Source of the DNA: Histomonas meleagridis 2922-C6/04-290x
Taxonomy: Eukaryota; Protista; Parabasalia
Assembly: GCA_020184695.1 (NCBI GenBank)
Contig: JAANOX010000268.1
Location: 1 to 64,000, forward strand
Direction: 5' to 3'
DNA: 64,000 nucleotides
This document shows, piece after piece, positions 3,001 to 53,248 of this stretch. Each line of letters starts with the position of its first letter. Position 1 is the first letter of the stretch. Under the pieces are notes generated by a model, which saw nothing but the letters and a program-made list of their open reading frames with translations, ran no database searches and was not told the origin of the DNA. Both the position numbers and the translations under genes were made by a program.

Positions 3001-4036
3001 TTAAAATGTTTCTCTTAGGTATAACTTCTAATGAATCTGATTTAGTTGTGATATTTCCGGGATTAAAGGATGGAGTAACTTGAAAATTTTGATAATCAGA
3101 ATTTATTGTTGGAAATTCGAGTTCGGGTTCAAATGAAGGTTCTTCTGAACCCAAATCATAAGTAATAGCCTGAGCTTGAATATCTTCTGTTTCTTCAACA
3201 AATGGTGAATTAGTAAAATTAAAAGTTGCATTATTTTGATTAATTGATCTGTTATCTTGACCAAATGCAATAAAACCAATTTTGGTATTGTTTTGAACTG
3301 GTGAACATGAGTTTATAAAGTTTTTCGAAAAATCATAATTGCAATTAATTTGTAATAAATTCCAAGTATTATTAGAAGAATTAATATTTATCTGTTGTTG
3401 ATTAAGAATATTATACACAATGATCTGAGCTTCATTCCTAATGTGAGAAATCTGTTCATCATTCCAAAATAATCTAAACGGGGATTCTCTAAGTCTGTTT
3501 GGTCCTATAATAGGACGTAAATCGAGTAGACCTCTGTCAAATTCCTCTATCGTTGTAGGAATGGGAGGATTGTGGGTATTAATTCTTAATATATCATGTT
3601 GAATAATGGCTTGTCCTCGTGCTAGAATAGCCCCATTCGAGTCATTACATTGTATAGGTAAAAATCTGAGAATATTAATGTCTGATGAAATAATCACCCA
3701 ATTTGGTGGTGGAGGTAATGGTGTTCCTTCTGGGCTTGTTGGTGTTGGGTGGTAATGACGACCTCGTATTAATAAAATTTCTTGTTGAAATGGAAGTTCT
3801 TGATTAATTTCAAGAACAAAATCTTCATCATTTTCTTTTTGTTCGAGGTTAGCTTCCTCTTCAATAATCGGTTCTATCCTGTGGTCTTGTGCCGTTTTTT
3901 CATGAGTAGTGTCGGATTTTTCCGCAATATATTTATCTGATAATTTTTCCGACCGAACAAAACTGGTATCAATCGAGTGCCCTGGGGGAGTTATTTCCGA
4001 AAATCGGGTTCTCGGACGCAAAAAATCAATATTCAT
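1..4036 (-). mobile_element. Degenerate 5' half of an RLE-type (R2/NeSL/CRE-like) non-LTR retrotransposon; continues beyond the left window edge
   Basis: ORFs 2156-4036, 1664-2035, 1540-1845, 1280-1543 and 642-854 join into one polyprotein across a few stops and frameshifts; 2156-4036 and 1664-2035 are in frame, separated by a single TAA. It carries C2H2-type fingers (CECYKLIKSGNDLISHMTKVH, CPIPNCKYFSNTNKSLFSHITYSH, CKYCETYWTSDSKGLHNHC). Manual translation of 240->1 gives SNAAAYGPDGISNYI*KLG...CPELFKLSKTIMLYKKGDAQNPHSWRPISITPT, the GPDGI and KKGD..P..WRPISI motifs that open non-LTR RT domains. Confidence 0.85.
2740..2890 (-). repeat. Three 54-nt (18-aa, PINEEHKV-containing) coding tandem repeats in the retroelement ORF
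   Basis: acttt(a/g)tgttcttcatt recurs at 2754, 2808 and 2862. Confidence 0.85.
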
Positions 4037-4052: not shown

Positions 4053-4126
4053 CTCCTCCCGTGTGGATCGAACACACGACTTCCAGATTAACAGTCTGAC
4101 ACTCTAACCAACTGAGTTAGGGAGGA
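4053..4126 (-). tRNA. tRNA-Asn (GTT)
   Basis: Reverse complement TCCTCCC TA ACTC AGTTGGTTA GAGT G TCAGA CTGTTAA TCTGG AAGTC GTGTG TTCGATC CACAC GGGAGGA G forms a full cloverleaf with anticodon GTT, followed by a T7 Pol III terminator. Confidence 0.96.
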
Positions 4127-4230: not shown

Positions 4231-5196
4231 ATGCTTGATCGGAAACTTCCCGTCATTGATCCAGAATTTCAATCTATGTATGACTGGGATAATGACCAAT
4301 CTTCTCCTTATGAAATTAAAATCATGTTTCCAATTTTTTCTCCCAAATTTTCACAAGATATGGTTAACGTAGAACTTAAAGATAACAAAGTAATTAACGT
4401 TACATTCGAAGATGGGCCACCTCTTCTTTGTGGTGTTCTTCAGGAAGAAATTTCAGATTTTTTATTATTTCTTTCAGGTAATAATTTAGTTCTTGTTCTA
4501 AAAAAGGTCAAAGACACCGAGTGGCCCCTTGTTGTTATTGACTTTCATCCAGAAAACAGACTTATGGATCCAAAAACTCTTTATGTGTTATCCTTTTCAA
4601 ATCCTAATGGAAACTCTATTACATACCTTTCGATGGCATGTGGATTTCGCTTTGTTCCTGCAATGAACGTTTTTGCTATTACTTTACTTAATCAAGGAAA
4701 TCCAGAATTCACAGAAAGTGCAATTGAACTATTAAAAATTGCATCTGAGCAGTACAACAGCTCTAGCTCTTTGCTCCACCTTGGAGCTATTTTGACATAC
4801 AGTTCTAATTGCGAAGAAGCTTATCAATATCTTCTCAAAGCTCTCGAAATGGGAGAAACAGAGGCAAGTTCCTATCTTGGGGAGTTGTATTCTCCATTTT
4901 CGAGAGTCACGCTCTTCAAAGAAAAGGATTCTGCAAAAGCCATTGAATACTATCAAAAATATGAAAGCCCTATTTCTCTTTATGGCATGTATGTAATTTA
5001 TCTAAAAGGAGATAATAAGGTCAAAAAGAATATGAAACTTGCAAAAGAATACTATGAAAAGGCAAAAAAGCTGAATCCAGAAATAGAAGATTTCCCCGAA
5101 GAAAAAAGGAGTATAACTCCTTTTGTTGCAGCTGGTGCTGTCGCTGTAGCTGCAATTTCCTATGTTGTTTTTAGAGTAATAAAGAGACAAAAGTGA
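4231..5196 (+). CDS. Tail-anchored protein with CS/Hsp20-like domain, Sel1/TPR-like repeats and C-terminal TM (Tom36/Tom46-like architecture)
   Basis: 321 aa; N-terminal beta-sandwich-like segment ending LVLVLKK..TEWPLVV; helical repeats (EEAYQYLLKALEMGETEA; KAIEYYQK; KLAKEYYEKAKK); terminal hydrophobic helix FVAAGAVAVAAISYVVF followed by basic RVIKRQK. Confidence 0.6.
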   Translation: MLDRKLPVIDPEFQSMYDWDNDQSSPYEIKIMFPIFSPKFSQDMVNVELKDNKVINVTFEDGPPLLCGVLQEEISDFLLFLSGNNLVLVLKKVKDTEWPLVVIDFHPENRLMDPKTLYVLSFSNPNGNSITYLSMACGFRFVPAMNVFAITLLNQGNPEFTESAIELLKIASEQYNSSSSLLHLGAILTYSSNCEEAYQYLLKALEMGETEASSYLGELYSPFSRVTLFKEKDSAKAIEYYQKYESPISLYGMYVIYLKGDNKVKKNMKLAKEYYEKAKKLNPEIEDFPEEKRSITPFVAAGAVAVAAISYVVFRVIKRQK

Positions 5197-51090: not shown

Positions 51091-51126
51091 TCAATAAATG
51101 TATGAGATAAAGAAACGGTTTTGTAA

Positions 51127-51745
51127 TGTAAGTGAATAATTATAAAGTAATTAATGAAAGTGAATAATTATAAAATAATTAATGTAAGTGAATAATTATA
51201 AAATAATTAATGTAAGTGAATAATTATAAAGTAATTAATGAAAGTGAATAATTATAAAATAATTAATGTAAGTGAATAATTATAAAGTAATTAATGTAAG
51301 TGAATAATTATAAAGTAATTAATGAAAGTGAATAATTATAAAATAATTAATGTAAGTGAATAATTATAAAGTAATTAATGTAAGTGAATAATTATAAAGT
51401 AATTAATGAAAGTGAATAATTATAAAGTAATTAATGAAAGTGAATAATTATAAAATAATTAATGTAAGTGAATAATTATAAAGTAATTAATGTAAGTGAA
51501 TAATTATAAAGTAATTAATGAAAGTGAATAATTATAAAATAATTAATGTAAGTGAATAATTATAAAGTAATTAATGTAAGTGAATAATTATAAAGTAATT
51601 AATGTAAGTGAATAATTATAAAGTAATTAATGTAAGTGAATAATTATAAAATAATTAATGTAAGTGAATAATTATAAAGTAATTAATGTAAGTGAATAAT
51701 TATAAAGTAATTAATGTAAGTGAATAATTATAAAGTAATTTATGT
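51127..51745. repeat. Minisatellite, 22 copies of 28 bp TG(T/A)AAGTGAATAATTATAAA(G/A)TAATTAA
   Basis: Period measured from AGTG at 51131 and 51159; only two variable positions. Confidence 0.97.
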
Positions 51746-52004
51746 ATAAAGTAAGACTTTTAACATTTGATCAAACGTGTCATAAAATTTATTTTCATTG
51801 TTCATTGTATTTCAATAATTTTTTCCATGGAATTCTTATTTAAAAAATGTTAAAATTTTTTAGAGATATTTATGTAATGAGTTTTTTGGTTTTCCTTAAT
51901 ATCATTTGATTCACGCATAAGAAAAACATAATGTGATGGATAAACTTATGAAAAACAGTTAAAAATAAGATGAGGTATTGTTTATTAGAGTGAAAGTGAA
52001 ATTC

Positions 52005-52105
52005 CTATGTGTTAGATTTGGAGGTGATCCTCAAATCAGATAAGCAAATCACCAGTTGTCAGATAGGTGGTGCATCAGATATCATCATTGAGGTAACGTA
52101 CATAC
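52005..52105 (-). other. 101-nt spliceosomal intron 2 of the non-coding snoRNA host
   Basis: GTATGT at 52105-52100; TCTAACACATAG at 52016-52005. Confidence 0.85.
52029..52093 (-). ncRNA. Box C/D snoRNA, copy B (intronic)
   Basis: CCTCA-ATGATGA(C)-tatctgatgcaccacctat-CTGA(D')-caactg-GTGATT(C')-tgcttat-CTGA(D)-t-TTGAGG; 6-bp terminal stem CCTCAA/TTGAGG. Confidence 0.82.
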
Positions 52106-52158
52106 TTAAATGATTTTCTTTTAAGTCAAATTATTAATAATAAAGAGATAGAAAAACC

Positions 52159-52254
52159 CTATGTGTTAGATTTTAGTCAAATACAGCTCAGATAAGCAAA
52201 TCACCAGGAATCAGATAGGTGGTGCATCAGATATCTTCACTGCAATGAACATAC
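52159..52254 (-). other. 96-nt spliceosomal intron 1 of the non-coding snoRNA host
   Basis: GTATGT at 52254-52249; TCTAACACATAG at 52170-52159. Confidence 0.85.
52182..52244 (-). ncRNA. Box C/D snoRNA, copy A (intronic)
   Basis: TGCA-GTGAAGA(variant C)-tatctgatgcaccacctat-CTGA-ttcctg-GTGATT-tgcttat-CTGA-g-CTGTA; terminal stem TGCAG/CTGTA differs in sequence from copy B but still pairs. Confidence 0.75.
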
Positions 52255-52262
52255 TTTAAATA

Positions 52263-52268
52263 AAGTGA
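52263..52268 (-). promoter_or_regulatory. Candidate initiator (Inr TCACTT) for the snoRNA host transcript
   Basis: TCACTT ends 8 nt upstream of the intron 1 donor; matches the trichomonad Inr TCAYTW. Confidence 0.45.
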
Positions 52269-52384
52269 CTTATTTAAAAATGGTCCAACATTGAATACTT
52301 TATCAGAATTTTATAACGCTTAACGTACGATTTTTATTGTGTGGTTTACTTATCAGAAAAAAATACGTTGTAAATCATTCCCAA

Positions 52385-53248
52385 ATGTATCGAAATCAGC
52401 CAGAATTCAATCGTATATGTGTAAAAGCATCGAGAGACAGAGCTTATAAAAGACACATTGAAGCTTTGAAAAAAATTCAGGCAAGTAAGCCATCTACTCC
52501 TCAACATCATCGAAATTATGAAACTCAAAAACTTCATAGTACAAATTTTAACAAAGACAAACAAATTCGTAGTAGTACAGATAATATGCGGAAAACGAAT
52601 AGCTCCCGAAATATCCAAAGACCATATACCCTTCATTCAGCTCATGCACAAAAAGAGGAAATGGACAGAATTTCACGGGAGAACCACAAGCTGTTTGTTG
52701 CTGTCCAAGAAGCAAAACCAGTATTAAGCAGAAATGATTGGTACCTTCATCAAATTGATCACATATATCAAACATCAAAAATGTCAGAATTCAAGAAAAC
52801 AATACCAATAAGCGAAGTTAGGTCTTCTTTAATGAAATCACGTCCTCATACTACATATCATATAAATCGAAATTCACTTCCTCCACTAAATTCCAATCGA
52901 AGCAGTCATAAACAACATAAACCAAGTGAAGAAAAAGAAGAAAGTCATACCAACAGTCCAACAAACAAAACTGAAAATGAAAATGAAAATCCTCCAAAAC
53001 TTTCTGTAAAAATAGAAGTAAACGAAAAAGAAAGTTCTGATAGTTCACATCATACAGAAGAAGAAGAAGAAACAAAAGAAGAAGAAAAAGAAACAAAAGA
53101 AGAAGAAAACCTTGAAAAAATAACAGAACCAATAATTGAAAAAGAAGAAGAACAAAAACCTGTTCAAGTAACTGAGGACAAACCAAATAATGAAGAAAAA
53201 GAGGAAGATCAGGAAGCTAATAAGAAGTCAGGTTGTTTCATCTCATGA
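52385..53248 (+). CDS. CFAP97/KIAA1430-like protein with acidic tail
   Basis: EEMDRISRENHKLFVAVQEAKPVLSRNDW motif; Inr TCATT before ATG 52385. Confidence 0.6.
   Translation: MYRNQPEFNRICVKASRDRAYKRHIEALKKIQASKPSTPQHHRNYETQKLHSTNFNKDKQIRSSTDNMRKTNSSRNIQRPYTLHSAHAQKEEMDRISRENHKLFVAVQEAKPVLSRNDWYLHQIDHIYQTSKMSEFKKTIPISEVRSSLMKSRPHTTYHINRNSLPPLNSNRSSHKQHKPSEEKEESHTNSPTNKTENENENPPKLSVKIEVNEKESSDSSHHTEEEEETKEEEKETKEEENLEKITEPIIEKEEEQKPVQVTEDKPNNEEKEEDQEANKKSGCFIS

Follow-up and report, generated by a model that had tools for sequence, protein, structure and literature searches.

Here, we describe a small transcription unit of the poultry pathogen Histomonas meleagridis, situated in a 64-kb window (64,000 nucleotides of contig JAANOX010000268.1), that is probably a dedicated non-coding host mini-gene delivering small nucleolar RNAs (snoRNAs) from spliced introns. 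The unit occupies the minus strand of the window from 52281 or 52266 to 51966 and holds two introns resembling the type A introns of parabasalids, each enclosing a box C/D cassette (Table 1). The annotation of the H. meleagridis assembly GCA_020186115.1, in which the neighbouring protein is encoded on contig WSYJ01000186.1, has nothing at 51966-52281, and the H. meleagridis genome paper does not mention snoRNAs; description of the unit thus fills an annotation gap. A first-pass annotation of the window had proposed a non-coding host gene in which splicing serves to release two snoRNAs, and its coordinates, intron ends (GTATGT and AAATCTAACACATAG), TCACTT element, and stop codons in all three frames of the 53-nt second exon were all reproduced when checked against the sequence.

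The RNA evidence consists of the contigs of four H. meleagridis RNA runs (X1, X2, X3, and X8), which were assembled with a 31-nt word and drop minor forms. Depth is zero over 51759-51962 in all four runs and, over 51963-52217, amounts to approximately 60-280 in X1, X2, and X3, near the level of the neighbouring mRNA in X1 and X3, and approximately 20 in X8. Because the adjacent ~200 nt are silent in every run, the signal represents transcription, and carry-over of DNA was rejected as its source. The contigs of all four runs terminate at 51966-51975, and those of X1 and X2 carry 23-24 extra T on the plus strand at 51966, the poly(A) tail of a minus-strand RNA, 15 nt after TAAA (51984-51981). 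At the opposite end, coverage in three runs stops at 52217-52239 and restarts at 52340-52487, where a divergent plus-strand gene begins; the orientation of this neighbour also led us to discard the possibility that the unit is the 3' untranslated region (UTR) of an upstream gene. Exons that join in a protein-coding frame, an outcome that the first-pass annotation had named as fatal to its proposal, were rejected because the spliced RNA (104-119 nt) has no ATG, and no open reading frame (ORF) longer than 14 aa exists in the unspliced form. The unit is an independent, minus-strand, polyadenylated, non-coding transcript.

Two contigs at the unit are odd. One from run X3 extends past 51967 by 23 letters that are not poly(A) and are absent from the window, and one from run X2, covering 52036-52217, joins the spacer of copy 2 to the 3' flank of copy 1 and has three other differing letters. 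Both could be template-switch chimeras, products of gene conversion, or transcripts of a further paralogue.

Table 1. Features of the candidate snoRNA host unit in the H. meleagridis window
Feature	Position	Strand	Basis
Upstream element GGACCATTTTT, candidate core promoter or start site	52276..52286	-	GG(N)CCA recurrence; same 11-mer in L015
Initiator-like TCACTT, alternative start (A at 52266)	52263..52268	-	sequence
Predicted exon 1, 12 nt (start 52266) or 27 nt (start 52281)	52255..52266	-	inferred; without ATG
Predicted intron 1, 96 nt, GTATGT ... AAATCTAACACATAG	52159..52254	-	sequence
Putative box C/D snoRNA copy 1; C 52240-52234, D' 52214-52211, D 52191-52188; stem 52244-52240 with 52186-52182	52182..52244	-	
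Predicted exon 2, 53 nt, stops in all frames, without ATG	52106..52158	-	sequence
Predicted intron 2, 101 nt, GTATGT ... AAATCTAACACATAG	52005..52105	-	sequence
Putative box C/D snoRNA copy 2; C 52088-52082, D' 52062-52059, D 52039-52036; stem 52093-52088 with 52034-52029	52029..52093	-	
Exon 3, 39 nt; AATAAA/TAAA 51986-51981; poly(A) addition site 51966	51966..52004	-	sequence and RNA contig ends

Each of the two cassettes spans 53 nt and consists of a C box, a 19-nt spacer, a D' box (CTGA), 4-6 nt, a degenerate C' box (GTGATTT/TGGTGAT), approximately 8 nt, and a D box (CTGA). The C box is ATGATGA in copy 2 and GTGAAGA in copy 1, which retains GA at positions 3-4 and G at position 6. The copies are 91% identical over 55 nt, and their only differences are two positions of the C box and 3 nt of the D'-C' spacer; the first-pass annotation had correctly confined the differences to the C box and spacer, counting the whole 6-nt spacer as changed. 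Its account of C-D'-C'-D cassettes closed by stems that differ in sequence and nonetheless pair, within diverged flanks, is borne out by the alignment and the stem energies: the terminal stem of copy 1 is TGCAG/CTGTA (5 bp plus 3 bp, -4.8 kcal/mol) and that of copy 2 is CCTCAA/TTGAGG (6 bp, -7.5 kcal/mol), so that the sequences are unlike between the copies, as they are in comparison with the orthologues described below, while pairing is kept. The end of the D box is 21 nt and 23 nt from the branch A in the two introns, in agreement with the earlier estimate of 22-24 nt, closer than in vertebrates. A search of the entire window by a plain C/D criterion, which required a C and a D box, a CTGA between them, and 5 bp or more of stem, matched these two cassettes alone. 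It is very likely that the cassettes are snoRNA genes.

The deviation of the copy 1 C box from RTGATGA at position 5, along with the restriction of weak Rfam matches to copy 2, would fit a single working snoRNA accompanied by a decaying duplicate in a still-spliced intron. However, the guide, D', C', and D boxes of copy 1 are unchanged, its stem, composed of a different sequence, still pairs, which points to compensatory change under selection, and C boxes of the TGAAGA type, read by eye, are the commonest form among the counterparts from Trichomonas vaginalis discussed below. We consider decay of copy 1 improbable.

The 5' guide of both copies is ATGCACCACCTAT, followed by the D' box. Within this guide, ATGCACCACC is the exact complement of GGTGGTGCAT, a universally conserved segment of 18S rRNA; GGTGGTGCATGGCCG is a universal eukaryotic 18S primer site (PMC3940700), and GGTGGTGCAT is part of such a site. 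The guide would accordingly be predicted to direct 2'-O-methylation of a G in GGTGGTGCAT. Weak Rfam matches, all to copy 2 and below the gathering score, were obtained to GlsR4 of Giardia (21.8 bits, E 0.35; cut-off 70) and to the Drosophila 18S guide snoMe18S-Gm1358 (18.8 bits, E 4.9; cut-off 50), with which the C box and AUGCACCAC of the guide are shared.

The ends of the two introns were compared with splice signals elsewhere in the genome. The motif CTAACACAYAG occurs exactly three times on both strands of the window, each time with GTATGT 60-90 nt upstream, and two of these occurrences are introns 1 and 2. The third belongs to a 70-nt element at 12795-12726 (minus strand), the ends of which are identical to those of introns 1 and 2 and the removal of which joins ORFs of 112 and 137 aa in phase 2 at a Pro-His junction; the downstream part of this gene encodes an Initiator-binding domain (IBD; Pfam PF10416, E 3.7e-13). 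The IBD genes of T. vaginalis contain type A phase 2 introns at similar Pro-His junctions, validated by polymerase chain reaction (PCR) and long reads (PMC13548475), which suggests that this intron position is old and conserved. Because introns 1 and 2 share their ends with an intron that restores a reading frame, the motif can be taken as the working splice signal of the H. meleagridis genome. With GTATGT, TCTAACACATAG, and lengths of 96 and 101 nt, both fall within the published type A consensus, GTAYGT ... (A/T)CTAACACAYAG, in which the 3' splice site and the branch site are fused (Vanacova 2005, as cited in PMC13548475), and within its 40-200 nt spacing.

Comparison of the two units, which repeat at spacings of 149, 152, and 154 nt, revealed only three islands of similarity: one at the 5' splice site, a second covering the snoRNA core (91%), and a third at the branch/3' site, where 15 of 15 nt agree; between these islands, the sequences have diverged, with insertions and deletions. 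Such retention of the islands amid divergence is expected if the snoRNA and the splice signals are both under selection, and, judging from this alignment, the splice signals of introns 1 and 2 are under visible constraint after the duplication.

Relatives of the window unit were found both in H. meleagridis and in metagenomes. In a 21-kb locus on H. meleagridis contig WSYJ01000009.1 (L001), a 113-nt GTATGT...TCTAACACACAG element at 16474-16362 (minus strand) contains C and D boxes together with a stem; it lies 94 nt past the stop codon of a RING-finger gene and would be either a 3'-UTR intron or a separate mini-gene. Metagenome contigs were scanned for the combination of GTATGT, with TGATGA close by, and CTAACACAYAG; this returned 23 loci, 14 of which lie on AT-rich contigs of one organism and represent 11 distinct introns of 93-105 nt. 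Among the other nine, one is a further snoRNA-containing intron on a short AT-rich contig (L002), and eight look like expected chance matches. A Cpn60 encoded on one of the organism's contigs is 79% identical to that of T. vaginalis and 78% identical to those of H. meleagridis and Tritrichomonas foetus, which identifies the organism as an uncultured parabasalid, and the same-contig Cpn60 led us to reject an origin of the matches from yeast introns. All 11 introns contain a D box or a close variant together with pairing flanks, and none interrupts an ORF: they are intergenic, often on the strand opposite to both neighbours. One of them (L005) has the same 17 nt ATGCACCACCTATCTGA, comprising the guide and D' box, as the window snoRNAs, combined with another terminal stem; the two hosts have the snoRNA in common and no alignable exon sequence, and in the window, each intron holds one cassette. 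The other relatives include sequences with sub-gathering Rfam similarity to SNORD31 (E 4e-4; L016), SNORD18, and SNORD29, the SNORD29/31-like group being L018/L007/L002 and L016.

Spacing in these introns is stereotyped: 5-11 nt separate the 5' splice site from the C box, and the branch A follows the D box at a distance of 18-26 nt (for L012, the position of the D box was corrected by eye). When the 5' and 3' flanks of 15 introns were swapped, the pairing energy changed from -3.74 to -1.57 kcal/mol, and none of 20,000 permutations was as good as the true arrangement. The first-pass annotation had suggested a genome scan for the same motif arrangement outside protein genes and in other parabasalids. 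At least four parabasalids besides H. meleagridis show this architecture, and orthologues of the window snoRNA are among their cassettes. Around Cpn60, ~80 kb of sequence from T. vaginalis, H. meleagridis, Tritrichomonas musculus, and T. foetus lacked any canonical intron motif, and two samples of the uncultured parabasalid were identical at the SNORD31-like locus, yielding no polymorphism signal.

These data bear on the possibility that the cassettes are a chance resemblance or a mobile intron-like repeat without snoRNA function, as two near-identical cores in tandem and the lack of an Rfam family at the gathering score might suggest. Against this, the scans of the whole window for the 3' motif and for the C/D definition return only these sites, so few that the arrangement goes beyond chance; the guide is kept in three other species in which stems and flanks differ; other members of the class have different guides resembling SNORD31, SNORD18, and SNORD29; and there is the outcome of the terminal-stem permutation. 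Chance or mobility is very unlikely.

A recurrent element was also detected upstream of the hosts. The sequence GG(N)CCA at 52286-52281, within GGACCATTTTT, permits a start at 52281. This motif, often in the form GTTGG(N)CCAT, is located 15-53 nt before the 5' splice site in 9 of the 13 snoRNA hosts of H. meleagridis and the uncultured parabasalid (the window, L015, L012, L019, L018, L009, L016, L005, and L001; binomial p ~2e-9), with an 11-mer identical to GGACCATTTTT in L015. In both H. meleagridis hosts, the window unit and L001, TCACTT follows just downstream of a GG(N)CCA-type element (GGCCA in L001). Its recurrence argues for independent promoters of the hosts and makes GG(N)CCA a candidate promoter or start element specific to snoRNA mini-genes. 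Transcription of the window unit would start at 52266, with a 12-nt exon 1, or at 52281, with a 27-nt exon 1.

Further counterparts are already in print. Callejas-Hernandez 2025 lists, as "not validated by RNAseq", 34 intron sequences of T. vaginalis and 20 of T. stableri (PMC12316389, S3 Table); the main text of that paper never uses the word snoRNA and treats the sequences as possibly inactive introns or remnants. We read the S3 sequences by eye only, without running them through programs. On this reading, each of the 18 canonical T. vaginalis type A entries (including chr_VI:7173298-7173427) has a C-D'-C'-D cassette and pairing flanks; number 16 carries the guide ATGCACCACCTA and is an orthologue of the window snoRNAs, number 3 matches the snoRNA of L001, and others match L006, L009, L012, L017, L019, and L002/L007. 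Approximately 17 T. stableri entries likewise resemble snoRNA-bearing introns. Ten type A-like sequences outside protein genes had earlier been set aside by Wang 2018 (PMC6260720). Simoes-Barbosa et al. made a passing mention in 2008 of T. vaginalis "intronic snoRNAs (our unpublished data)" (PMC2588526), a 2011 paper judged intronic snoRNAs "highly unlikely" in Trichomonas and Giardia (PMC3228867), and the supplements of the 2009 and 2011 Trichomonas snoRNA papers contain no C/D sequences. The assertion of the first-pass annotation that such genes are undescribed in parabasalids was therefore nearly right, save for this one unpublished-data mention and the T. vaginalis sequences in print, which were never named snoRNA hosts.

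As a separate observation, three validated T. vaginalis UTR introns of 100-102 nt (TVAGG3_0998030, TVAGG3_0105790, and TVAGG3_0535830; PMC12316389 S2 Table) are of the size of the snoRNA introns, and all three are in genes for splicing factors (two Prp18 paralogues and LSm3).

We consider it quite likely that introns 1 and 2 are spliced, given that their ends are identical to the working splice signal of the genome, that these motifs are strictly conserved between the two units and throughout the relatives from four to five species, and that the spacing is stereotyped. Several results weigh against a spliced snoRNA host. No exon-exon joint, including the junctions 52255/52158 and 52106/52004 predicted in the first-pass annotation, was seen in the contigs of the four RNA runs, and contigs that span all four splice sites are unspliced, with depth like that of the neighbouring mRNA; this was the sole direct test of splicing in the analysis, and it gave no sign of splicing. 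The negative is weak: minor paths are dropped from contigs, the 31-nt assembly word exceeds the length of exon 1, and standard libraries would lose a spliced RNA as short as ~110 nt. In run X1, one contig continues unbroken across the predicted 5' end of the host unit into the divergent neighbour gene. The S3 Table remarks on the counterparts read "No RNAseq evidence", "No SJ reads" or "Not assembled, low coverage", and there are no splice-junction reads for any of the ~35 T. vaginalis and T. stableri counterparts (PMC12316389); spliced products below the size range of the libraries would account for this absence, and processing without splicing fits it equally well. With respect to the snoRNAs themselves, Rfam at gathering thresholds found only a tRNA and no snoRNA family in the 64-kb window, the 3' guide spacer of ~8 nt is short and the C' box degenerate, and both the 3 nt of pairing beside D' and the exact target nucleotide are predictions from the 18S rRNA of other eukaryotes. 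Of the original proposal, then, transcription, polyadenylation, non-coding character, and C/D anatomy stood, and the contigs yielded an unspliced precursor only.

An apparent joint at 51684 in run X2 was rejected as an alignment artefact of a 28-nt tandem array, which caused a false partial alignment of an mRNA contig (51684-51713).

Polycistronic snoRNA clusters of plants and yeast are processed by nucleases, and the main rival explanation is of this kind: real snoRNAs would be cut by endonucleases and exonucleases from an unspliced, polyadenylated, dicistronic precursor, the intron-like ends being relics or U1/U2 sites that merely aid processing. The precursor alone was seen, at high depth, with a poly(A) tail and no joints, and the counterparts without splice-junction reads in the S3 Table (PMC12316389) agree with this model as well. 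It leaves unexplained, however, why a 6-nt 5' site and a 12-15-nt branch/3' motif are intact in both units despite diverged flanks bearing insertions and deletions, and in every counterpart across four to five species, where relics would decay; the stereotyped placing of the C box after the 5' site and of the branch A after the D box likewise speaks for splicing, and the tiny exons would make the spliced product too short for standard RNA-seq, explaining the absent junction reads. We regard nuclease processing of an unspliced precursor as unlikely.

Under the preferred model of a spliced snoRNA host, a primary transcript of ~300-316 nt would start at 52266 or 52281, be made by RNA polymerase II, as the poly(A) tail suggests, and be cleaved and polyadenylated at 51966. 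Each of its type A introns would enclose one paralogous copy of a compact box C/D snoRNA of ~64 nt, on which the core box C/D proteins would assemble at the C/D kink-turn closed by the terminal stem. This stem would also draw together the 5' splice site, which precedes the C box by 8-11 nt, and the branch point, which follows the D box by 21-23 nt. Excision of the intron by the spliceosome would come next, and debranching followed by exonucleolytic trimming to the protected small nucleolar ribonucleoprotein would produce the mature snoRNA, with the spliced exons (~104-119 nt without an ATG) as a by-product. RNAs of ~64 nt would be expected to accumulate from both introns.

In the surroundings of the unit, a 28-nt AT-rich unit repeated 22 times in tandem (96% matches) occupies 51124-51746, between the 3' end of a 960-aa ORF and the host gene. 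The divergent neighbour at 52337-53248 (plus strand) is annotated only from 52661 (195 aa), whereas its ORF is open from 52337 and RNA contigs begin at 52340-52487; a paralogue of this gene bears the name "Splicing factor" in NCBI, our search detected no Pfam domain, and both the gene model and the name look doubtful. An approach by synteny through this gene gave no result, the best named homologue being a paralogue elsewhere in the H. meleagridis genome, and a database search for transcript contigs through the neighbouring proteins returned genome assemblies only. Rfam identified tRNA genes at 4053-4126 (minus strand) of the window, at 4432-4503 and 4897-4968 (minus strand) of L019, and at 3104-3175 (minus strand) of L018, the last ~125 nt from the snoRNA intron.

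Trichomonads and their relatives maintain a complete spliceosome for only a few dozen introns, and the reason is an old question. The window unit is probably one member of a lineage-wide class of snoRNA host mini-genes that works like UHG and GAS5 of animals. The broader proposal, which we advance tentatively and with somewhat less than even confidence, is that ~100-nt type A introns in dedicated non-coding mini-genes exist only to deliver C/D snoRNAs, constitute a large share of the canonical type A introns, and could be a main selective reason to keep the spliceosome, with the published "inactive introns" of T. vaginalis and T. stableri belonging to this class. Mini-genes of such a class would each be equipped with a dedicated GTTGG(N)CCAT element upstream, have exons reduced to vestiges of 10-50 nt, and end in a poly(A) site. 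As for the share of the class, ~300 kb of DNA sampled without bias, made up of the window, L001, and sequence flanking the other loci, has four canonical introns, three of which carry a snoRNA; T. vaginalis has 39 validated type A introns next to the 18 sequences. Together, the window unit and its relatives in at least four other parabasalids show that a considerable part of the canonical introns still present lies outside protein genes, each of these introns being predicted to wrap a methylation-guide RNA. Splicing of these introns would tie ribosome maturation to the spliceosome and offer a testable reason for its retention. Two published sets of "orphan" or "inactive" T. vaginalis introns could be re-read as snoRNA genes, adding ~18 candidate C/D snoRNAs, and the unusually short distance of ~22 nt between D box and branch A would provide a compact system for studying the coupling of snoRNP assembly and splicing.

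Among known sequences, close counterparts of the window introns are the S3 introns of T. vaginalis and T. stableri (PMC12316389) and the Wang 2018 set (PMC6260720), which have the same 5' and 3' motifs, lengths of ~100-135 nt, positions outside ORFs, and, by eye, cassettes with complementary flanks. The T. vaginalis and T. stableri sequences differ in having the motif ACTAACACACAG instead of TCTAACACATAG, longer outer stems, A-rich tracts before the branch site, and one intron per locus instead of two. The validated type A introns of parabasalids have the same ends, the same fused branch/3' site, and a range of lengths that includes those of introns 1 and 2; however, they lie in the coding sequence or UTR of protein genes and have been shown to be spliced, whereas introns 1 and 2 are in a non-coding unit and enclose snoRNAs. 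With snoMe18S-Gm1358, the window snoRNA has the C box and the AUGCACCAC guide in common, and its predicted target G would precede the Drosophila site by 3 nt should the fifth-nucleotide rule apply, but by the Rfam threshold (18.8 versus 50 bits), it is not a member of that family. The compact ~53-nt layout and very short D'-C' spacer of the cassettes are also features of compact C/D RNAs of the archaeal type.

The non-coding snoRNA hosts of animals, such as UHG/SNHG1, GAS5, and Drosophila dUhg, are polyadenylated, lack a conserved ORF, carry one C/D snoRNA per intron, and have poorly conserved exons, the function residing in the introns; in mammals, UHG hosts SNORD29 and SNORD31. The H. meleagridis host is like UHG and GAS5 in being polyadenylated and non-coding, with one snoRNA per intron and a snoRNA that is conserved while the exons are not. 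Unlike the animal hosts, it has exons of only 12-27, 53, and 39 nt and introns of ~100 nt nearly filled by the snoRNA. Vertebrate intronic snoRNAs have a reported optimum of ~50 nt between the D box and the branch A, in contrast to ~22 nt here, and the H. meleagridis unit further departs from the animal hosts in that it holds two paralogous snoRNAs with one guide, belongs to an intron-poor lineage, and is predicted, on the basis of its conserved signals, to be spliced.

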